NCBI GenBank assembly: GCA_033442325.1 | Contig: JAWQFM010000009.1 | Location: 987,729-1,051,728, forward strand | Direction of reading: 5' to 3' | DNA length: 64,000 bases | Origin: Salpingoeca rosetta | Taxonomy: Eukaryota; Protista; Choanoflagellata | Part shown: piece after piece, positions 49,118 through 59,660 of the stretch | Position numbering within the stretch: the first letter of the stretch is position 1 | How the letters are laid out: the number at the start of each line of letters is the position of its first letter | Translations under genes and position numbers: made by a program | Notes under the pieces: generated by a model | The model's database searches: none | What the model was told of the DNA's origin: nothing | Seen by the model: the letters and a program-made list of their open reading frames with translations, nothing else

Positions 49118-49782
49118 CCTGTGCGCTGGTGTTTGGCGTGTTTGGCGTGATGACCTTTTGCAGTTTCAGTCGGAGCAGCGCTACATGTACTCTACTTGTG
49201 CGCAGAGCCACTTCATGGCATGTGCTCACAATGCATCCCATCGTGCGCGTGCATGTATGTCCACAAAAATCAGGTCATGTGCAAGCCCGGTACTGTTAAG
49301 TCCCACACCAAGTTTCAGACACAGCTGTACGTGCTGAGCAAGGAGGAGGGTGGCCGCCACACGCCGTTTGTTGATGGCTACCGCCCCCAGCTGTTCACCC
49401 GCACTGGCGATATTACGTGCACGGTCAAGCTGCCTGATGGCAAGATGGTCATGCCTGGCGAGGACGCAAGCTGCGAGATTGAGCTTATCACCGACATTCC
49501 GCTCGAGGTGTGTGTGTGTGTGTGTGTTCGTTTGCCCTGCTGAATGTGTTTGCTTGTGTTTGTTCGCTTTTTGCACTGCTACATCTCGTGGGATGCTGCG
49601 TCCTGCCTGCATGGCGCTTCCGTACCAACCCTCTTTCATCCTTGCCTCTCAAACTCATCAACCACCACCCCCTTCCCACTTACATCATCAATGCTCTGTG
49701 AACACAGGAGGGCCAGCGCTTCACTGTGCGCGAGGGCCACAAGACTGTCGGCACGGGCATCGTCTCCAAGATCATTGCCTGA
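46122..49782 (+). CDS. TUFM: Mitochondrial elongation factor Tu (multi-exon)
   Basis: Presequence [15 protein letters not shown], then [71 protein letters not shown] and C-terminal [20 protein letters not shown]. Confidence 0.96.
47777..47882. repeat. (TTG)n trinucleotide microsatellite
   Basis: Visible directly in a TUFM intron. It produces spurious poly-L/T/Q ORFs. Confidence 0.95.
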
Positions 49783-50685: not shown

Positions 50686-53600
50686 TCATATGCATTCGGC
50701 AGGGCAATTGGTGAGGATGATGCTGTCGTAGTTGTTCACGCATGTGGCAGTGAAGTCCTGACAGTCGACGCTGGTGAGATTATTGCTGCCGAAAGCCAGG
50801 TGTCCAAGGAAAACGGTTCCAGTCACGCTGGTAATGCTGCCGAAGCTGATGCTGGTGAGGGCCTCATTTCCGCCCACTGCAATATCGCCGTCCACAGTGC
50901 TGATGGCACCAAAGTCAATGGTGGTGAGGGCAGGCTGTGAAGTGATGCGGAAGCTGCCGGTACGGGTTAGAGCGGGGAAGCTGAGAGAAGTAAGCGCATT
51001 GTTTTGCACGACTTCGACAGCGCCAGATGTATTGGTGAGACTGTTCAAAGTAATGCCAGCAAGTTTGGCGTTCCTGGCAATGAGTATCGTGTTGTCGACG
51101 GCCTCGACGGCACCAAAATCGACACTAGTCAGAACGCTGTTGTCCATGACGCTAACAGCGCCCACAGTGGTGAGAACGCTGCCAAAGTCGATTGACGGGA
51201 GGCCACTGTTGTCGCTGAACTGCAAGAAAGTTTGTACCGTGGTGATGTTGCCAAAGTCGACACTGGTCAGCGCACCGTTGGCTCTAATTTCGACGAAGGC
51301 ACCCACAGTCGTGATGCTATCAAAGTCGACGCTGGTCAGCGCACCGTTGCCGCTAAATTCGATGGAGGTACCCACAGCCGTGATGCTGCCAAAGTCGACG
51401 CTGGTCAGCGCATCGTTGTCCTTGAAAGCGACACCACCCTCGACATTTGTGATCAGACCAAAGTTGATACTGGGCAGTGCATTGTTGTTGCCAAAGAGGA
51501 TGTTATCGAAGGTGCGGATGTTGCGAAAGTTGATGCTGGTCAGCGCCCTGTTATCGGTGAACTTGGCCTCGTCAATGCTGGTCAGTGAGCTGCCAAAGTC
51601 CACCGACGAAAGGGCGACATGGTTGTCGAAAGTGATGGATTCGAGGCTGGTGATGCTGCCAAAGTCGACACTGGTCAGCGCATTGTTGATGTCGAACTTA
51701 ATGTGTGTGCGGACAAAAGTAATGCTGCTAAAGTTGACGCTGCTCAGCGCATCGTTGTCGAGAAACTCGACGTAGTCACCCACATTGGTGAGGGCGCTGC
51801 CAAAGTCAATCAGTGGAAGGGCGTCATTGTCCTCGAACTTGGCATAAGTGGTGATTTGGGTGATGACGCCAAAGTCGACGCTGGTCAGTTTGTTGTTGTC
51901 GTGGAAGAGCACGTGTTGATCCACGAGGTTAATGTTAGCAAAGTCCAAGCTGGTCAGCGCATAGTTTGTGTCTATCTGAACGTGCCCTCCGACAGTGGTC
52001 ACGCTGCCAAAGTCAATGTCAGTTAGGGCAACGTTGTTTTTGAGCTCAATGCAGCCAGCCACGTTGGTGACGGCGCTAAAGTCGAAGCTGGTCAGGGCGT
52101 CATGGAAGTCCACGAAGACGCACCCGCTAAGCTCAGCGAGGATGTCGCCGAGGTTGATGCGGGGGAGAGCGTCGTTGTCGTGGAATTTCAAGTCGTTGCC
52201 GACCTCCTTGATGCCGCCAAAGTCGATGCTCGTCAGGTTTTGATTCGAGGACAAAACCGCGCTACCCACATAAGTGAGAGCGTTGCCAAAGCTGATGCTG
52301 GGCAGGGCATCGTTGGCTGCGAAAGTCACAGTACCCTTCACACTGACAATGTCGCTAAAGTCAACGCTGGTCAGGTCGGCATTTGAAAGGAAGTTGAGGT
52401 TACCCTCGACGCGAATGATTGCGCCAAGGCTGACGCTGGGGAGGACGGCGTTGTTGCTGAAGGTAATGTCCCCAGTCACATTGGTGATTGCGCCAAAGTC
52501 GACGCTGTCAAGCTTGTTGTTGAAGAGAAAGGAGATGTACACAGGCACAACGGTAAGGGTGTTACCAAAGTCAACACTGACAAGGCGTGAGTTCCTGACA
52601 AACTCAATGTATCCGCCCAGGTTGATGAGGATGTCGCCGAAGCCCATGTGCGGGAGGGCGTCATTGTCGTCAAATTTGATGTGTTGGGCAATGCTGGTGA
52701 TGCTGGCAAAATCAACACTGGTCAGGTTGTCGTTGTTGTAGAATCGGACATAACCGCCAATGGTCGTGACACCGCCGAAGTCTGCGCTTGTCAGGGCAGC
52801 GTTTGTCTCGATGTTCACAAAGCCACCCACAGCAGTGAGCGTGCCCCCAAAGTTCACAAGTGGGAGAGCGCTATTCATCACAGCGGTGATGGATGCGGTC
52901 ACATTGGTGATACTGCCAAAGTCAATGCTGGCCAAGGCACTGTTTTGAAGGAAACGGATGTCGCCGTGGACCTTAGTGATGCTGCCGAAATCAATGCTGG
53001 TCAGGTTGTCGTTGGTCCGAAACTCAATTGTACCCGCTCTGGTGAGAGTGCCCCCGAAGTCCATCAATGGGAGGCCGTCATTGTCTAAGAAGTAGACGTG
53101 TCTGTCAACGTTTGTCACACTGCCAAAGTCGACGCTGGTCAGGGCGTCGTTGTCGTCGAAGAGGACGTAGTCAGCACTGGTCACGCTGCCAAAGTCGACG
53201 CTGGTCAGGGCATCGTTACTGCGAAGCTCAATGTAGCCACCAAGGTACTTGAAAGTCTCGCCAAAGCTGACCAATGGAAGGCCATCGTTGTCATCAAACT
53301 TGATGTAGCCACCCACGTTGGTGATGCTGCCAAAGTCAACACTGGTCAGCGCATCATTGTCGTAGAAGAAGACATGGCCAGTGACCAGGGAAATGTCACC
53401 AAAATAGACGCTGGGCAGGGCATCGTTGGTGTCAAACTGTATGTAATCACCCACTTGAGTGGTGCTGCCAAAGTCAATGCTGGTGAGGTCGTCGTTGTCG
53501 TTGAAGTAGATGTGACCATGAACGTCGGCGATATTGCCGAAGCTCACGCTGGCCAATGCACCGTTGCTGCTGAACTCAACATAGTCGTCCACAAGCGTGA

Positions 53601-56600
53601 ACACATTGCCAAAGTCAATTAGTGGAAGGCCGTCGTTGTCATCAAACTTGACGTGGCCACCGACACTGGTGACGCCGCCAAAGCCAACGTTGGTCAGCGC
53701 ATCGTTGTCGTCGAAAAAGATGTAACCGCCCACCTGGGCAATGCTGCCAAAGTCAACGCTGGTCAGCGCGCTGTTAGCGCTGAACTCGACGTAGTCACTC
53801 ACATCGGTGAGGATGCTGCCAAAGTCAATGACTGGAAGGGCACCATTCGCTTCAAAGTCAATGCAGCCACCAACGCTGGTGATGACACCGAAGTCGATGC
53901 TGGCCAGCATGTTGTTGGACGAGATTGAGATGCACCCACCAACGCTGGTAAGGACCTTGCCGAAGTCGATGCGGGGGAGGGCATCGTTGTTGTCGAATGC
54001 GACGTATTCGACAACGTTCTCGATACTGCCAAAGTTGACACTCGTCAGGTTGCTGTTGGAGAAGAAGCTGATGCACCCGTCGACGGCTGTGATGCCGCCC
54101 CCAAAGTCAAACACCTCCAGCACATCATTATCGATCAGTGTCACGTTGTCCACCACACGCCCACTCTCGACACCAAACGGATCACCGGCCCACTTCACTG
54201 CGCCACCAACGTCGTGCAGTGACCCAAGGTCAATGACACGCATTGGGTTGCTGCTCATGTCCAGGTCGCCGCCGACAGCTGACAGCAGACCGAGGTGGAC
54301 GGAAGAAATGCTGTTGTCGCTAATGTCGATGTCACCAGTGACATTTTTCACGACGCCAAAGTTGACGCTAATCAGGTTGCTGACGGAGGTGAAGCTGATG
54401 CACCCGTCGACGGCTGTGATGCCGCCCCCAAAGTCAAACACCTCCAGCACATCATCATCGATCAGTGTCACGTTGTCCACCACACGCCCACTCTCGATAC
54501 CAAACGGATCACCAGCCCACTTCACCGCACCACCGACATCCTGCAGTGACCCAAGGTCAATGACACGCATTGGGTTGCTGCTCATGTCCAGGTCCCCACC
54601 AATCGCTGTCAGCGCACCGAGGCGAAGGGATGAGATGCTGTTGCCACTGACGTCAACATAACTGCCGACCGTCGCCACGATGCCAAAATTGACGCTCGTG
54701 AGGTTGCTGTTGGAGGTGAGGTTGATGCACTCATCCACTCTGCTGATGCCGCCCAAGTTGACGCTAATCAGGTTGCTGACGGAGGTGAAGCTGATGCACC
54801 CGTCGACGGCTGTGATGCCGCCCCCAAAGTCAAACACCTCCAGCACATCATCATCGATCAGTGTCACGTTGTCCACCACACGCCCACTCTCGATACCAAA
54901 CGGATCACCAGCCCACTTCACCGCACCACCGACATCCTGCAGTGACCCAAGGTCAATGACACGCATTGGGTTGCTGCTCATGTCAACGCTGCCGCCAACA
55001 GTTGTCACAGCGCCAAAGTCGATACTCGTCAGGTTGCTGTTGCTCATGTCGAGGTCACCACCAACGGCTGAGAGCAGGCCAAGGCGAAGGGAAGAAATGC
55101 TGTTGTCGCTCATGTCAACGCTGCCGCCAACAGTTGTCACAGCGCCAAAGTCGATACTCGTCAGGTTGCTGTTGCTCATGTCGAGGTCGCCACCAACGGC
55201 TGAGAGTAGGCCAAGGAGAAGGGAAGAAATGCTGTTGTCGCTCATGTCAATGTTGCCGGTGACATTTGTCACAACACCAAAGTCAATGCTGGTGATGCTG
55301 TTGTTGCTCATGTCGAGGTCGCCATCAACGTTTGCCAGCAAGCCGAAGTTGATCGCAGTAATGCTGTTGTCGTTCAGGGCCACGGTCCCACCGACGGACG
55401 TCAAGTTTCCAAAGTCAACTGACACCAGCGAGCCTCCGCTGCCAACGACATCGCCGCCAACATGCACAACTGATCCAAACTGAAGCGAGGAAAGGGAGGT
55501 GTTGAGGGATACGGATCCTGCGACGCTGTTCAAGGCGTAAAACTCATCGCAGCAGCAGTTCACGACGGAGGCAGCGGTGCAAAATGCATTTGCGACGAAT
55601 TCAAGCCGGGAGACGGGGTTCGCACAGTCCAGGGTGACGTTGCTCACGCAAGACTTGCTCTTGCTGCTGGACGCGATTGTTAGCACGGAGACTGGTACGG
55701 CTACACTGGCGATGACAGCGATCAACAGCATCGCCAAGAGAGTCTTGCTCCTCCAGCGCGTCCCGTGCTTCAATTCAACCGTGCCACCAGTCTCCAGCCC
55801 AAACGACTTGAGGTCAGCGGGTGCATGCTTCATCTTCAGCGACGACGAGGAAGATGACCCCGTGTTGAAAGTGTTGTTGCTGGTTAGCTTGTTGTGCGTT
55901 GGCTGCTGAACTTGCGGCTCTTTCTGCGTGGTAGCAAGCGTAGCGCTGCTCAGTGCTGTCTCGGTGACTGGGTCATGTGCAACGGCAACGACGGGAAGCG
56001 TGGCCTTCTTCTGCTGGCCAGCTGGCGTGACTTGCTCGATTCTGCACTGCAGCTGAGCAGAATGTGATATGTACGCGTGTGGTATGTGCGTGGAGCTGGG
56101 GTCAGGAATCGAGCTTTTATGAACGCATCAGGTAGTCAGGTAGGTAAAGTGGTGGGGCAATATGTGGGGATGGTGTCGCATCAGCAGCAATTGCAGCGGC
56201 AAATACATGTGGCGTACCGTGTGTGACATTGTCTCTTGGTTGGCTGAAAGATGGTCAAGCGCAGTCTCAAGGCTGTCCGGCTGCAGCAGCAGCTTCTTGT
56301 CGAGAACATAGAGCCCAGTATCATCCTGGGATAGTGCATGGTGCTCGACCTTGTCTTCCCCAATAACCTGGGAGTGGAAAGATGGACATGTGTCAAGGAG
56401 AGGGTCATCATCACTGGCGTTGTGAATACTTCGGTGGGTGGCTTCTTGACACACGCCGCAACACAGTTACATACAAGCGGAGGTGCTCAGGCACAGCAGC
56501 AAACCAAACAAAGGCACCACCCATTCCAAACATACAAGGCTGATGGCGAGCTGGTTGTCGGATTTGGTTCGCCGCACCACGTAGTCCCCGGGTGCGCAGC

Positions 56601-57073
56601 CGGCACGGTCGAGAAGGAGCACAGCGGCTTCTGCTTTGCCCATCTTGTGGATATTGGGGGGCGGCAGTCCGCCATCGCCATGGTGATGCAGCTGCAGCTG
56701 GGGCGCAGTTGTTGTTGGCGTCTCAGGTACCGTCTACCAGGGTTGATGCGGTGACAAAAAAAGGCAAGGTCCAGTGAGGGATCGTTGTTGCTACAACTCA
56801 GACAGAGGCAAGGTGTCACTCGACCAAACACGAAATACAGCAGAGAGAACCAAAACATATCCCCAACAAGAGCAACAACGAGAAAGAACTGGGGGGGGGG
56901 GATCCAGATACAGGACGCACACACGCACAGACACACAGAGGGAGGCACACGCACTAGGGGGATCCAGATACAGGCACGCACACAGACACAGACACACAGA
57001 GGGAGGCACACACGCACGCACACACACACACGCACACACACACACGCACACACACACACGCACGCACACACAC

Positions 57074-57114
<41 letters not shown>

Positions 57115-57559
57115 GCCCTTGGTTGTCCTGAACCTCGAGTTTGGCGATGATCTTGTCAATCAAGTCGACAGGCACATCCGCGCTCTCATCGGGGTTCCAC
57201 GAAAAGTGAACGACATGGTCGGTGAGTTGGGCCTGAGCCTTCGGCTCCTCGAATTGGTCACACATCTTCACGAGGAAGAACCGCTTGTCGTGGTGCAAGA
57301 TGTACTGCAGTTCCTCGTGGGTGCTGAAGTCGCTGTCTGTCTGCTCCCCATACGTCCGTGTGCCAAGCAAAACGGCCATCCGGCAGCCATGCAAGGATCG
57401 AACCACCGTCCTGGCCGCATCTTCTCCAGATGAAGCATCGCCGATGAATACGTCAATGCCACGGGCCTTGAGGGCTTCTTCCAGAACCTTGCCAGCGTGC
57501 TGCGCCTCGCTGAAGCAAAGCGAGATGAAGACATCAACGCCCTGCGATGGCATGGTCAT
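50686..57559 (-). CDS. Putative type II membrane receptor TIR-SH2-linker-TM-(L-domain/LRR-like solenoid), about 2050 aa; exons 57559-57134 (or -57110), 56733-56536, 56367-56218, 56052-50686
   Basis: All junctions are phase-0 GT..AG and continue in frame into the 1715-aa ORF (56052-55833 = 73 codons, no stop). TIR: [35 protein letters not shown]2: [54 protein letters not shown]: [29 protein letters not shown]. About 22-23 aa repeats of the type [23 protein letters not shown] follow. Confidence 0.8.
54064..54983. repeat. Three near-identical ~200-bp intragenic copies (about 54064-54267, 54359-54595, 54756-54983)
   Basis: DNA encoding [13 protein letters not shown](Q/H)[14 protein letters not shown](I/V)[13 protein letters not shown](D/N)[21 protein letters not shown] occurs three times with few substitutions. 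Confidence 0.9.
54976..55250. repeat. 132-bp (44-codon) tandem duplication within the ectodomain exon
   Basis: gctcatgtcaacgctgccgccaacagttgtcacagcgcc... starts at 54976 and again at 55108. A third partial copy begins near 55240. Confidence 0.9.
56218..56733 (-). other. SH2 domain split over two exons (56733-56536, 56367-56218)
   Basis: Manual translation. The FLVR-equivalent GDYVVRR keeps its Arg at 56574-56572. alphaA is KAEAAVLL, betaD is VEHHAL and alphaB is SLETALDHL. Confidence 0.75.
57134..57559 (-). other. TIR (TIR_2-like) domain exon
   Basis: betaA DVFIS, alpha[14 protein letters not shown], beta[11 protein letters not shown] and alpha[10 protein letters not shown]. The GAG-GAA Glu codons lie at 57316-57311. 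Confidence 0.82.
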
Positions 57560-58206
57560 AGTGGTGGTGGTGGTGTGGGACGGAAATGAACGATTACCCC
57601 TAGGGGATGGATGAAGGAAACAGCGCGGGAAAGGGGAAAATAAGGGATACATTTCGAGGGGTGAAACAATTTGTCTCGAAAAGATGGGTAGGCGTTGATG
57701 GGAACAGCGTTACAGTTTGTTGCATATTCTTTATTTGAGGGAAATAGCTTGAGGTGTTGAGAACGGACGTTTCATCAGTGCATGTAAGCTTGACGATCGG
57801 GTCCTCGTCAGAAAGGCCATAAACTTGAGTGAGGAGGGAAATAGTTTGAGGAGTTCAAAACAACTTTTCTCAACGTGGTGCCACATGCAATCAGCACCAC
57901 GCTTCTGTCATGTTAACCAATTTTCGGCCTGGGCAGATGAGAGTCCCAGATTGCATAGGTGCACATCCAGCGTTTCGGCGGATTTCATTCATGATGTCTC
58001 ATGATGTGATCGAGGGCGATGTCTGCTGGCCACGGCAAGTGAGAAATCCACCGGCCCATTGTATCGTATCCGTTTAGTCAGTGAAATAAACAGCTGCGCA
58101 ATAAACATGACCGACCGTGGTCGCATGCATCGAACAAACTTCAGATGCTGTTGATGTGTCGAATAACATAATGTAACAACATCCGACAGGGCAGTTGCAC
58201 ATGAAT

Positions 58207-59660
58207 TCATTGACGAGTGGAAAGCAAGCTGCCGGACTGCCCAGCGTCATCGCGTGCACTACGCTGCAGCAGCTTCGACAGGGATTCTGTATCCGATCGA
58301 AGCTTGACAATCTGAAGAAGCAAGCAACGCCCCCCCCCCCAAGTGCAGGAAATGACAGGAAGGTGAGGAACCAGAGGTGCATACAATCAGAAAGCCGCAG
58401 GCACGCGCGTGCACAGGCAAAGAGACAGCCAGACAGGCAGGCAGGTAGACGGACAGACAGACAGACAGGCAGACAGACAGACAGGCAGGCGGGCAGGCAC
58501 ACAAACAAAAACAAAGACGCACACACAGACACACAACAAACACACGGGCCCTAACCTCCTGCAACGCATCCTGCATTTGTTTCCGCAACACCTTCTGCTG
58601 TGCCCGTTGCGCATAAGCATCTGGATCCGTGTCAGGTCCGACTTTGGGTGGGAGTGGGGCAGCGGCCTGAAGTTGGGTGTCGGGAAGGGTATTGGTGAGT
58701 AACGGGGGTGGCATTTGGTGTCACACGTGGTGTCACAGCGGGGCGAGTGAAACGTGTGACAGGTGACAGTGCTGACAAGAGGTGTTGCGCAAAGCACAGA
58801 CATGGATCTGTCACTGCGTGACCTTACCTCCTCGCTCTTTGAAAGTGTTGCCTGAAGTGTGTCGAACCTGTGCACAAAACAATGTGAAAGGTTGGGCTGA
58901 CACCGTGAATCCGGGAAACGAGCGATTGGAGGACGCTCAAAAATCTTGTAGCAAAAGCGCCAGCTGAAGCAGGGAATCACAACACGACAGCATAACAGCT
59001 CGACGCGACACATACACACCCACACACGCACACACAGACGGACACACAGACACACAGACACACACACAAGCAAACAAGCAAACAAACAACTCAACAAACA
59101 AAAACCAAGGAGCAACACTCGCAGGCTACGCTGTATGCGTGCATGTGTGTGTGCGTGTGTGTGCGTGTGCGTGAGGCGCAAAGCACCCGCCAGCACCTCT
59201 GTTTAAAGTTCCGGATGAGCCGCTGCTGCCGCTGAAGCTCAAGGTCCAGTTTCGTGGACGGCGGTTTCAAGTCCTTGGATGGAGGACCTGTGGCGCAGCG
59301 CGACCGTGGGTGCGTGCGCATGTGAATTTGAATCAGTAGAGTGTGAGACCTGAACTCAAGGGATGACGTAGACTGCAACAGAAGGTGTATAAAATGCCGT
59401 GCACAGACATACACACAGACACATGCACGCGCAAACACACGCGCACTCGCGCGAACACACACGCACACGGGCATGCAAGCAACAAGCGGACGTCCGTGCA
59501 CACCACCCAAGCCCACCAAATGTTTCCACAGCCTTGGTTGGTTCCTGTTTGTCCTGCTGTTGAAGCCGAGTGTCCACACCATGTACCTTCATCAATACTT
59601 TCTCTTGTGTTCTGATTTGAATGCAAGCAAGAACAAACACGTGAATGCATGGGTGAGCGG

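Follow-up and report, generated by a model that had tools for sequence, protein, structure and literature searches.

A Salpingoeca rosetta gene encoding N-terminal TIR and SH2 domains, a predicted type II membrane helix, and a long LRR ectodomain

Introduction

TIR domains connect anti-phage defence in bacteria with immunity in plants, SARM1, and Toll signalling in animals. Animal TLRs and IL-1Rs are type I proteins, with the ectodomain at the N-terminus and the TIR domain at the C-terminus. According to a previous study, TLRs of animals and choanoflagellates share the order signal peptide, LRR, TM, and TIR, while choanoflagellate Kinase TLRs are also type I and carry the kinase between TM and TIR; no type II form was described, and both MyD88 and IRAK were reported missing from choanoflagellates (Richter et al. 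2018, PMC6040629). The combination of TIR and SH2 in choanoflagellates was already reported in the same study, in which these proteins were described as "lacking a transmembrane domain" (Richter et al. 2018, PMC6040629).

Here, we describe a minus-strand gene found in a 64,000-nt stretch of S. rosetta DNA (hereafter the window). Its product begins with a TIR and then an SH2 domain, followed by a linker devoid of tyrosine and a single hydrophobic helix; a Cys-rich cap, approximately 66 LRRs, and a C-terminal Cys cap make up the rest, in this order. Its domain order is not that of TLRs, the TIR domain being located at aa 1-142, the TM at aa 362-384, and the repeats at aa 441-2016.

Gene Structure and Transcripts

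The locus is one four-exon S. rosetta gene, which is transcribed into a single spliced mRNA. A preliminary description of this DNA had joined a free-standing 1715-aa repeat ORF (50686-55833, minus strand) and a separate TIR ORF, both of which are present in the ORF list, into one spliced gene through three phase-0 GT-AG junctions; this has been confirmed by assembled RNA contigs from runs X4 and X5 and by a raw read from run X18. The two contigs (1674 and 1675 nt, from one study) are collinear with the four exons and join the segments 57627..57134, 56733..56536, 56367..56218, and 56052..<55300. No surplus letters occur at the contig joints, and the introns are bounded by CT..AC on the plus strand, which reads GT..AG in the direction of the gene. 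One raw RNA-seq read of run X18, which belongs to a second study, crosses 56733|57134; the X18 raw reads are confined to exons, and their direction is consistent with minus-strand RNA. Transcript coverage is low: the two contigs have depths of 11 and 19, only one of two runs contributed raw reads, and just one of these reads crosses a junction. The contigs end about 80 nt past 55300, and over the remaining 4.5 kb the gene is connected by the open frame alone.

The X4 and X5 contigs begin at 57627/57628, which gives the 5' untranslated leader a minimum extent of 57560-57628, and inspection of the sequence revealed that this leader, from 57627 where the contig begins up to 57559, contains no ATG. 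The coding part of exon 1 (57134-57559) encodes aa 1-142 with the TIR domain; exon 2 (56536-56733) encodes aa 143-208, with a spacer rich in Pro and Thr ahead of the N-terminal SH2 half; exon 3 (56218-56367) encodes the C-terminal half of SH2 (aa 209-258); exon 4 starts with the linker at 56052 and runs to the TGA stop codon (50686-50688). All introns are GT..AG and in phase 0. Intron 1 (56734-57133, 400 nt) is absent from both contigs and from one X18 raw read; a (GT)n microsatellite is located inside it, at about 56969-57121. Intron 2 (56368-56535, 168 nt) corresponds to a contig joint from 56365/7 to 56534/6 with a two-letter ambiguity; its length is divisible by three, yet it contains an in-frame stop. 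Intron 3 (56053-56217, 165 nt) was located from the spliced contigs and the sequence. The acceptors at 56733, 56367, and 56052 are where they had been claimed, with GT donors present after 57134, 56536, and 56218; these three exon ends had not been given before and are placed by the present analysis. When the four exons are joined, the frame is open for 6141 nt, equal to 2046 aa.

TIR Domain

Pfam TIR_2 (PF13676) matched exon 1 at aa 10-120 with 29.3 bits against a cut-off of 28, a margin of just 1.3 bits, and the six-frame genome search gave 29.1 bits at the locus. When the TIR exon was compared with PDB sequences by phmmer, nothing was returned at E <= 1, so that profile and fold searches were required. 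The AlphaFold (AF2) model of the domain (pLDDT 88.7, pTM 0.85) consists of five strands alternating with helices. Foldseek returned 93 PDB matches of this model at E <= 0.001, of which the best 50 listed are all TIR domains; SARM1, RUN1, TIR-1, and AbTir were the best (TM 0.65-0.70), with 22-26% identity to SARM1. The TIR profile matched solely Roq1, RPV1/RUN1, and SARM1 in PDB. The TIR_2 score, the AF2 fold, and the Foldseek matches thus agree on the identity of the domain, and its assignment to the SARM1/plant/bacterial type, not the TLR/MyD88 type, is supported.

A glutamate, E83 (codon start 57313), is invariant in the family alignment (53/53 sequences) and, in the AF2 model, is among the first residues of helix 80-89, which follows strand 61-66. 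By motif position, we take E83 to be the putative equivalent of SARM1 E642 and of the RUN1 catalytic glutamate E100; the RUN1 PDB entry among the Foldseek matches is titled as an E100A mutant. The invariance of E83, together with best structure and profile matches that are all NAD-cleaving TIRs, suggests selection on catalysis. The domain deviates at two nearly invariant family positions, with Cys for Arg at 15 and Gly for Cys at 40.

SH2 Domain

Exons 2 and 3, searched separately, gave no match to Pfam SH2 (PF00017), and none of the 127 matches of a six-frame Pfam SH2 search of the genome is located at this locus. Since the two SH2 halves are too short to score alone, the missing Pfam match was not counted against SH2. 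An HMM made from 13 Pfam-verified S. rosetta SH2s matched aa 172-256 across the exon junction (31.8 bits, E = 1.7e-9), and the same HMM gave E > 0.4 on unrelated proteins. An SH2 profile made from the family only, covering both exon halves, matched 42 PDB chains, all of which are SH2; ZAP-70 came first (E = 7e-12), and ZAP-70/Syk are the closest to the profile in PDB.

The FLVR (betaB5) arginine is present as R196 in the motif GDYVVRR and is aligned with the FLLR arginine of ZAP-70; the binding positions are also occupied by K175 at the alphaA position (exon 2) and by H217, the betaD His (exon 3). For exon 2, a paralogous exon with 65% identity was found in the genome, and exon 3 weakly matched the C-terminal half of a Pfam-verified SH2 at C23:867593-867736. 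Against the Pfam SH2 cut-off of 21, the closest paralogue SH2, which is 58% identical, scored 22.5, the annotated paralogue PTSG_02597 scored 18.9, and the metagenomic protein P0201 scored 25.2. The SH2 domain across two small exons, as first read from the letters, is therefore supported by two profile searches and by the conserved R196.

Membrane Helix and Topology

Exon 4 starts with a low-complexity linker (aa 259-361, 55744-56052), across which the transcript contigs are continuous. The linker contains zero tyrosines and holds an ATG at 55833, which is the start of the free-standing ORF and is located 31 residues ahead of the hydrophobic helix. This helix (aa 362-384, 55675-55743) is the sole segment with a Kyte-Doolittle 19-residue mean above 2 (2.69; next best 1.43), and is flanked by K, R, R, K on its N side and K, K on its C side, a positive-inside bias that is weak (+3 vs +1). 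The N-terminus of the protein is not hydrophobic and is unlike a signal peptide, and the C-terminus has no hydrophobic tail. A single hydrophobic segment preceded by basic residues, with no N-terminal signal peptide, is thus present as claimed, which corresponds to a signal-anchor pattern (one internal hydrophobic helix without a cleavable signal peptide).

As no signal peptide precedes approximately 360 N-terminal residues of cytosol-only domains, the helix would act as a signal anchor. The NxS/T sequons are distributed unevenly, with 23 located C-terminal of the helix (predicted outside) and one N-terminal of it (predicted inside), and the paired cysteines are almost all C-terminal (six and four in the caps, plus repeat pairs). 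Judged from these sequence features, we infer a type II topology, in which TIR and SH2 would be cytosolic, and about 1660 residues of disulfide-capped solenoid bearing N-glycosylation sequons would be outside.

Predicted LRR Ectodomain

The predicted extracellular part begins with an N-terminal Cys-rich cap (55507-55671), which contains six Cys, including a CCC motif at aa 424-426. It is followed by approximately 66 BspA-type LRR repeats of 22-24 aa each (50776-55506), spanning aa 441-2016, and by a C-terminal cap (50689-50775) with four Cys at aa 2022, 2029, 2041, and 2045. The repeat unit was 22-24 aa in 47 of the 58 segments cut. According to Pfam, exon 4 matches LRR_5 (PF13306) with 110.1 bits against a cut-off of 27.7, as well as Recep_L_domain with 30 bits. 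The AF2 model of the repeat solenoid (pLDDT 92.4) shows regular short strands, and all of its Foldseek matches are LRR proteins, the first being gut-bacterial LRR cell-surface proteins (4gt6, 4fs7); TM values of these matches are low (0.27-0.46), and a single match has an E below 0.001. The Cys-capped repeat solenoid proposed earlier is borne out by the LRR_5 score, the AF2 model, and the Cys at both ends.

In sequence, the ectodomain is closest to metagenomic LRR_5/Recep_L proteins (21-37% identity), several of which are named bacterial by their sources. Recent internal duplications were detected by TRF, with a period of 327 nt at 54027-54754 and a period of 132 nt at 54976-55330.

Paralogues and Family

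S. rosetta has at least five TIR-TM-LRR paralogues, as well as relatives with other membrane parts. The genome contains 35 TIR paralogues and 41 matches to the juxtamembrane-cap module; the two co-occur at C9, C4, C8, C10, C35, and weakly C13, while approximately 35 of the 41 cap-plus-repeat matches have no TIR nearby. At C10, the TIR and cap matches were both reported in a 2367-aa open frame, so that this paralogue is probably one ORF without introns; the C10, C35, C13, and C32 paralogues are known from match coordinates and reported open-frame lengths alone. The S. rosetta TIRs of this subfamily (about 35) are also fused to ARM, Ank, Roc-COR, WD40, and helicase.

Four paralogues, PTSG_02597 (728 aa), PTSG_03080 (860 aa), PTSG_05359 (597 aa), and PTSG_02868 (612 aa), are annotated as hypothetical or uncharacterized proteins. 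Their N-terminal TIRs are 45-60% identical to that of the window's gene, and three of the four have an SH2 with 44-58% identity; TIR-SH2 on a membrane part is thus already present in public annotation (PTSG_02597, PTSG_03080, PTSG_05359). PTSG_02597 and PTSG_03080 share the TM, the CCC cap, the repeats, and the C-terminal cap with the window's gene in equal domain order, whereas the window's gene has approximately 66 repeats instead of about 10-17, and a linker without tyrosine. Paralogues carry acidic Tyr motifs, such as YEEI in PTSG_02597. A four-helix LHFPL/claudin-like domain replaces the single TM and LRR in PTSG_05359, while PTSG_02868 lacks SH2 and has a propeller-like ectodomain.

The gene's own public protein model was not found with an exon-4 query in the 983-3129 aa range (top match 23%, none above 37% identity), nor with PTSG_02597 and PTSG_03080 queries (paralogues only), nor in an exhaustive TIR search (best 60%); these protein searches were length-limited or over cluster representatives, so the absence of the model is unproven. 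Protein searches with the TIR and with paralogue queries found no TIR-SH2-TM orthologue outside S. rosetta; the only other TIR+SH2 protein found was P0201, a metagenomic protein of 340 aa without TM, and metagenomes also contain TIR-TM-Kelch (P0187) and similar proteins. The preliminary description had known of no described receptor with this architecture. This stands for the literature searched, in which we found no paper describing TIR-SH2-TM-LRR, and TIR+SH2 is mentioned there without TM; it does not stand for the databases, where paralogues are already deposited as hypothetical proteins.

Proposed Mechanism and Alternative Explanations

Our main reading, which we put at roughly 55%, is that of a cell-surface receptor that binds ligand through its LRRs, clusters its TIR domains to give an NAD or nucleotide output, and is linked to tyrosine kinases by its SH2. 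The long LRR rod would bind an extracellular and probably multivalent ligand, e.g., a bacterial or cell-surface structure; ligand binding would cluster the receptors, so that juxtaposed TIR domains meet. As the TIR is of the SARM1/plant/bacterial type and has a glutamate at the putative catalytic position, clustering would most likely lead to NAD+ cleavage or to a nucleotide signal, as known from SARM1 and plant TIR receptors, and not to MyD88-type adaptor recruitment. The Syk/ZAP-70-like SH2 may tie the receptor to a large tyrosine-kinase network, either by docking on phosphorylated partners or by recruiting them. The receptor's own linker is tyrosine-free while acidic Tyr motifs occur in the paralogues, so it might hetero-associate with phosphorylated paralogues or with receptor kinases. 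As for its origin, the gene may have arisen when TIR and SH2 exons, all in phase 0, were placed ahead of a signal-anchored LRR surface-protein gene; the signal-anchored LRR surface-protein family has approximately 40 members in the genome. A broader and doubtful extension is that the family represents independently invented, ligand-gated and membrane-spanning TIR enzymes ("inverted TLRs"), whose LRR, propeller, or tetraspan outer parts would sense bacteria or other cells, with the SARM1-like TIR turning clustering into an NAD-derived signal and SH2 leading to tyrosine kinases.

Bacterial and protist BspA-type LRR proteins typically act as adhesins at the surface, and the protein may be mainly structural or adhesive, helping, for example, to capture prey on the collar, to attach the cell to a substrate, or to make contact between the cells of a rosette. 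The LRR rod would then be the functional part, with TIR-SH2 merely anchoring it or regulating its trafficking or turnover. The LRR_5 match, the LRR cell-surface proteins of gut bacteria among the top fold matches, and the recent repeat duplications, which are common in adhesins, are all consistent with this, and the largely TIR-less cap-plus-repeat family indicates that the ectodomain works without TIR-SH2 in most members. However, E83 and R196 are intact in several paralogues, and the membrane parts that carry the signalling domains vary from an LRR rod to a propeller or a four-helix LHFPL-like domain; such variety is more in line with a transferable signalling cassette than with an anchor, and we regard a mainly adhesive role as unlikely.

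Animal receptor TIRs signal through homotypic assembly, and the protein could instead be a receptor with a non-enzymatic scaffold TIR, as in TLR, MyD88, and IL-1R, whose output would pass through SH2 and tyrosine kinases. The subfamily TIRs on many partner domains could act as TIR-TIR adaptors, and the departures of this copy from two nearly invariant positions point in the same direction, whereas the best structure and profile matches are all NAD-cleaving and the glutamate is kept throughout the family alignment, which makes a scaffold TIR rather less likely still.

Finally, an internal promoter in intron 3/exon 4 that yields a separate, signal-anchored ectodomain protein from ATG 55833 as the main product, with the TIR-SH2 fusion as a minor one, is very improbable: the 1715-aa ORF has its own ATG ahead of the helix, most family members appear TIR-less, and the reads are too sparse to exclude a start within the gene, but the X18 depth of exon 1 (1.6-3.7) is similar to that at the start of exon 4 (0.5-4.4), the sole assembled transcripts are of the joined form in two runs, no read-start cluster was reported within the gene, and the annotated paralogues are equally fused, with C10 apparently holding TIR and cap in one frame.

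Significance

The signalling-receptor reading touches on the question of how TIRs reached the cell surface before animals arose. With the predicted topology, an enzyme-type TIR would have been coupled to a surface LRR a second time and in the opposite orientation, in a close relative of animals, and joined to SH2, a hallmark of the phosphotyrosine signalling expanded in this lineage. If true, inverted TLRs would represent innate surface sensing of a kind found in neither animals nor plants. The locus is also a warning: the intron-split SH2 falls below Pfam thresholds, and no public model of the gene surfaced in the protein searches, so domain surveys may have missed or mis-scored the class; the TIR+SH2 proteins described as lacking TM may be an example. 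S. rosetta is transfectable and gene-editable, with known bacterial cues; in such a tractable organism, the ligand, the NADase output, and the pTyr coupling should be directly testable.

Comparison with Known Systems

The TIR domain resembles those of SARM1, C. elegans TIR-1, RUN1, and Roq1 in its fold and profile matches, and probably also in the glutamate that opens the helix following strand C. SARM1, TIR-1, and plant TIR-NLRs are soluble and switched on by ARM/SAM or NB-LRR, whereas the TIR here is tethered to a predicted receptor. The SH2 is similar to that of Syk/ZAP-70 in keeping the FLVR Arg and the betaD His, but it is single instead of tandem, has Lys instead of Arg at alphaA, and is not accompanied by a kinase domain. 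Choanoflagellate Kinase TLRs, Kinase TIRs, and TIR+SH2 proteins are likewise lineage-specific fusions of TIR with phosphotyrosine signalling.

The same 22-24 residue period, consensus, and beta-solenoid occur in BspA-like LRR_5 surface proteins (Bacteroidota, Trichomonas, Entamoeba) and in Recep_L proteins; unlike the S. rosetta gene, the BspA-like proteins have no cytosolic signalling domains. The likeness to TLRs consists of three parts: a Cys-capped LRR-type solenoid predicted to face outward, a single transmembrane helix, and a TIR domain predicted to be intracellular. In comparison with TLRs, however, the S. rosetta gene is reversed, with an N-terminal TIR, no signal peptide, and a predicted type II orientation; its repeats are BspA-type LRR_5, its TIR is SARM1/plant/bacterial-like, and its SH2 is extra. 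The earlier view of an independently assembled receptor fits with a TIR unlike those of TLR/MyD88 and with repeats of LRR_5 instead of the TLR type, and the S. rosetta protein is a TLR analogue, not a member of the TLR family.

Gene structure and transcription

The ORF listing contains a free-standing ORF of 1715 aa (50686-55833) and a separate ORF with TIR-like sequence, which the preliminary description had linked on the minus strand into one spliced gene with three phase-0 GT-AG junctions. Joining of exons 57559-57134, 56733-56536, 56367-56218, and 56052-50686 gives 6141 nt encoding 2046 aa with one terminal stop and phase-0 introns; AG precedes each acceptor (56733, 56367, and 56052, minus strand), and GT donors follow 57134, 56536, and 56218. 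RNA evidence for the region 55300-58300 came from two runs of raw RNA-seq reads and two sets of contigs. The contigs of X4 and X5 (assembled runs of one study; 1674 and 1675 nt, respectively) cover 57627/8-57134, 56733-56534, 56365-56218, and 56052-55300 plus about 80 nt further. Their joints contain no extra letters, and on the plus strand the introns have the ends CT..AC; the second joint is ambiguous by 2 letters, with 56367|56536 among the options. Since the contigs lack three introns found in the genome, they are derived from RNA. One raw read of X18, a run from another study, crosses 56733|57134; the remaining X18 reads are confined to exons 1, 2, and 4, and their first mate lies on the plus strand, as a standard stranded library would give for minus-strand RNA. 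Read depth is similar in exon 1 and at the start of exon 4. Joined contigs, junction read, and open frame all bear out the single spliced gene, and the observation as a whole is confirmed. RNA coverage of the gene is low and the contigs were followed to about 80 nt past 55300; for the last 4.5 kb of exon 4, continuity is predicted because the frame stays open and the repeats are regular.

The leader of the receptor transcript is at least 68 nt long and has no ATG. The upstream minus-strand gene (58027-58300 and beyond) has its poly(A) site near 58059-58072, with loose T-runs before 58059 and reads beginning at 58072; therefore, the receptor gene is a separate transcription unit. About 430 nt of intergenic sequence lie between the end of this neighbour and the receptor transcript start; expression of the neighbour is high, with a contig depth of about 355 and a raw depth of 15-60. 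Expression of the receptor gene (55600-57560) depended on the sample: X18 covered the exons 1-4x, and X17, a run of the same study with similar sampling and 3x more reads than X18 on the neighbouring gene, had no read on the receptor gene. On the other side, a plus-strand ORF fragment (49196-49543) in tail-to-tail arrangement with the receptor gene encodes what was recognised by eye as a conserved C-terminal region of EF-Tu; it is probably an exon of the organellar elongation factor Tu gene.

Intron 1 is filled in large part by a long (GT)n/(GC-GT) microsatellite (56969-57121). GT runs of similar kind, coding for Cys/Val, follow the TIR exon in the paralogues on contigs C4, C14, and C30 (L062, L064, and L065), so intron position and microsatellite seem conserved. 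Intron 2 (56368-56535) is 168 nt long, a multiple of three, so that exons 2 and 3 lie in a common genomic reading frame; it contains an in-frame TAA, and its retention would thus cut the protein short inside the SH2 domain.

TIR and SH2 domains

Exon 1 matches Pfam TIR_2 with 29.3 bits (cut-off 28). Searched exhaustively, a set of 1.84 billion representatives yielded 620 relatives, 338 of them below E 1e-10. F11, S13, E18, L30, G71, E83, K98, C100, and W121 are invariant among 53 aligned relatives. The AlphaFold model from this 53-sequence alignment (pLDDT 88.7, pTM 0.85) has strands alternating with helices, and its best Foldseek matches in PDB are human SARM1 (identity up to 26%), grapevine RUN1, C. 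elegans TIR-1, AbTir, and TIR-STING, with TM scores of 0.65-0.70. The TIR assignment of the preliminary description is thus upheld by HMM and structural model. Among PDB sequences, the family profile matches Roq1, RPV1/RUN1, and SARM1 only. E83 is located in the motif F-S-T-x-E-E-L, at the start of the helix after strand C; judged by this motif and the sequences of plant TIRs and SARM1, it would occupy the position of their catalytic glutamate. Judged from sequence and model, the SARM1, plant, and bacterial matches indicate that the receptor TIR is of enzyme type, not of TLR/MyD88 type. This TIR (57134-57559) deviates from its family in Cys15 and Gly40, which replace a near-invariant Arg and a near-invariant Cys, respectively.

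The SH2 domain had been assigned to the two small exons. Neither exon 2 alone nor exon 3 alone has a Pfam match, and a six-frame genome scan with Pfam SH2 gave 127 matches, none at the receptor locus. An HMM was built from 13 full-length, Pfam-verified SH2 domains of the S. rosetta genome and searched on the spliced protein plus 270 other proteins; it recovered aa 172-256, across the exon 2/3 junction, with 31.8 bits (E 1.7e-9), together with the annotated paralogues PTSG_02597 and PTSG_03080 and one metagenomic protein, all others having E > 0.4. A second profile of TIR-linked SH2 regions only, which included the receptor's two exon halves as rows, matched 42 PDB sequences, all of them SH2, with ZAP-70 best (E 7e-12), followed by Syk and BTK. 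The domain was hence recovered by two independent profile tests. Its nearest paralogous SH2, 58% identical and above the Pfam threshold, is that of PTSG_05359, which like PTSG_03080 is named 'SH2 domain-containing' in UniProt. The domain keeps R196, the arginine of the FLVR motif, and H217, the histidine of betaD, and has lysine (K175) in place of the alphaA arginine. Elsewhere in the genome, a 1572-aa open frame (C23:867593-868264) contains a tandem pair of SH2 domains; of all SH2 domains in the genome, these come closest to the receptor SH2 in their C-terminal motif (H-L-x-T/S-N-x-E-S-M). The frame may represent the source lineage of the cassette's SH2.

Membrane topology and ectodomain

The sole strongly hydrophobic segment is aa 362-384 (mean 2.69, next best 1.43), with four basic residues and one acidic residue in the preceding 15 and two basic and one acidic in the following 15, in agreement with the single helix preceded by basic residues described earlier. 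The protein opens directly with TIR, as do all paralogues, so the claimed absence of a signal peptide also holds; the C-terminus has no hydrophobic tail. N-x-S/T sequons number one in the 361 residues before the helix and 23 in the 1661 residues after it. To our knowledge, TIR and SH2 are cytosolic wherever their location is known, so N-in/C-out (type II) is the reasonable reading of the topology. Tyrosine is absent from the cytosolic linker (55744-56052, aa 259-361). In PTSG_02597, PTSG_03080, and PTSG_05359, the linker has acidic Tyr motifs; one of these, YEEI, is similar to a classic SH2 ligand.

After the helix come six Cys, including a CCC motif, then repeats, some with paired Cys, and four Cys at the end. 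Pfam detects LRR_5 (BspA-type LRR, 110 bits) and Recep_L_domain (30 bits) in the ectodomain. When cut at the F-G anchor, the ectodomain falls into 58 segments, mostly single units of 22-24 residues; a few hold an insert or two or more units, so the count is about 66 repeats. The array includes recent duplications with periods of 327 and 132 nt (84-91% identity), among them a 109-residue block in three copies. The last 303 residues, with 36 homologous segments, gave a beta-solenoid model (pLDDT 92.4), consistent with the Cys-capped solenoid that had been proposed. Its fold matches are all LRR, headed by cell-surface LRR proteins of Faecalibacterium and Bacteroides and followed by TSH/FSH receptor and Toll ectodomains; their TM scores are low, and for solenoids that differ in curvature this is expected. 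The nearest sequence relatives of the ectodomain are metagenomic LRR_5/Recep_L proteins (21-37% identity), several of them source-named bacterial.

Related genes

In the S. rosetta assembly (55.4 Mb, 68 contigs), of which the window is C9:987729-1051728, the receptor TIR has 35 matches, the two SH2 exons have clear paralogues on C14 and C4, and the juxtamembrane-plus-cap (CCC) module has 41 matches, most without a TIR nearby. Several of the latter lie in open frames of 1000-2400 aa, and cap-module proteins form a large and apparently undescribed family of predicted signal-anchored LRR_5 surface proteins. The search for paralogues with the same order found TIR and cap as same-strand neighbours, at most about 2.5 kb apart, on C9 (the receptor), C4 (PTSG_02597), C8 (PTSG_03080), C10, C35, and weakly C13. 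Both C10 matches fall in a 2367-aa open frame, suggesting a single ORF without splicing. Other membrane partners occur as well: on C30, a TM-like helix comes after another TIR; PTSG_02868 has the order TIR-TM-propeller; and PTSG_05359 (C14:1320421-1321532; L064, L074, and L079) combines TIR-SH2 with a four-helix L_HMGIC_fpl/LHFPL/claudin-like domain (Pfam 51 bits). In PTSG_05359, the matches to TIR and to the first SH2 half both report a 320-aa frame, so these two parts are probably not separated by an intron. Given these pairings and partners and the mostly TIR-less cap genes, the likeliest history is that a TIR-SH2 cassette with phase-0 intron bounds came to stand before signal-anchored surface proteins on several occasions, or that duplication spread it.

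Possible function and comparison with known receptors

The architecture reading is supported. As a type II surface receptor, the protein would be clustered by ligand, bringing its TIR domains together. The likeliest output would be NAD+ cleavage or nucleotide signalling, because the TIR is SARM1/plant-like with an invariant Glu and because MyD88, together with IRAK, is reported absent from choanoflagellates (PMC6040629). SH2 would link the receptor to tyrosine-phosphorylated partners, and the tyrosine-free linker beside the Tyr motifs of paralogue linkers suggests docking in trans. An adhesin with a regulatory tail is a rival explanation, to be set beside the bacterial cell-surface LRR matches on one side and the invariant glutamate on the other. 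A TIR of scaffold type is another; the structural and profile matches point to the enzyme type, with E83 placed by motif. A separate product consisting of the ectodomain only would correspond to the free-standing ORF, and the contigs run from exon 1 into exon 4.

Two other choanoflagellates, S. urceolata and Microstomoeca roanoka, also have the receptor TIR subfamily, and many metagenomic proteins combine it with other partners, e.g., TIR-TM-Kelch and TM-less TIR-SH2; protein searches of limited reach found no TIR-SH2-TM protein outside S. rosetta. Neither TIR nor Toll nor SH2 is mentioned in the S. rosetta genome paper; in the literature searched, with incomplete coverage, the paralogue PTSG gene ids are unnamed and no choanoflagellate TIR receptor of type II was found described. 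The claim of an undescribed architecture therefore stands for the literature searched, but the paralogues are visible in databases. Choanozoan TLRs have been defined as LRR-TM-TIR, Kinase TLRs and Kinase TIRs have been described (Richter et al. 2018, PMC6040629), and SH2 has been listed among TIR-associated domains in intracellular proteins 'lacking a transmembrane domain' (PMC6040629). The receptor gene, one of a small S. rosetta family, encodes a TIR receptor variant that can be seen in databases but had not been described before.
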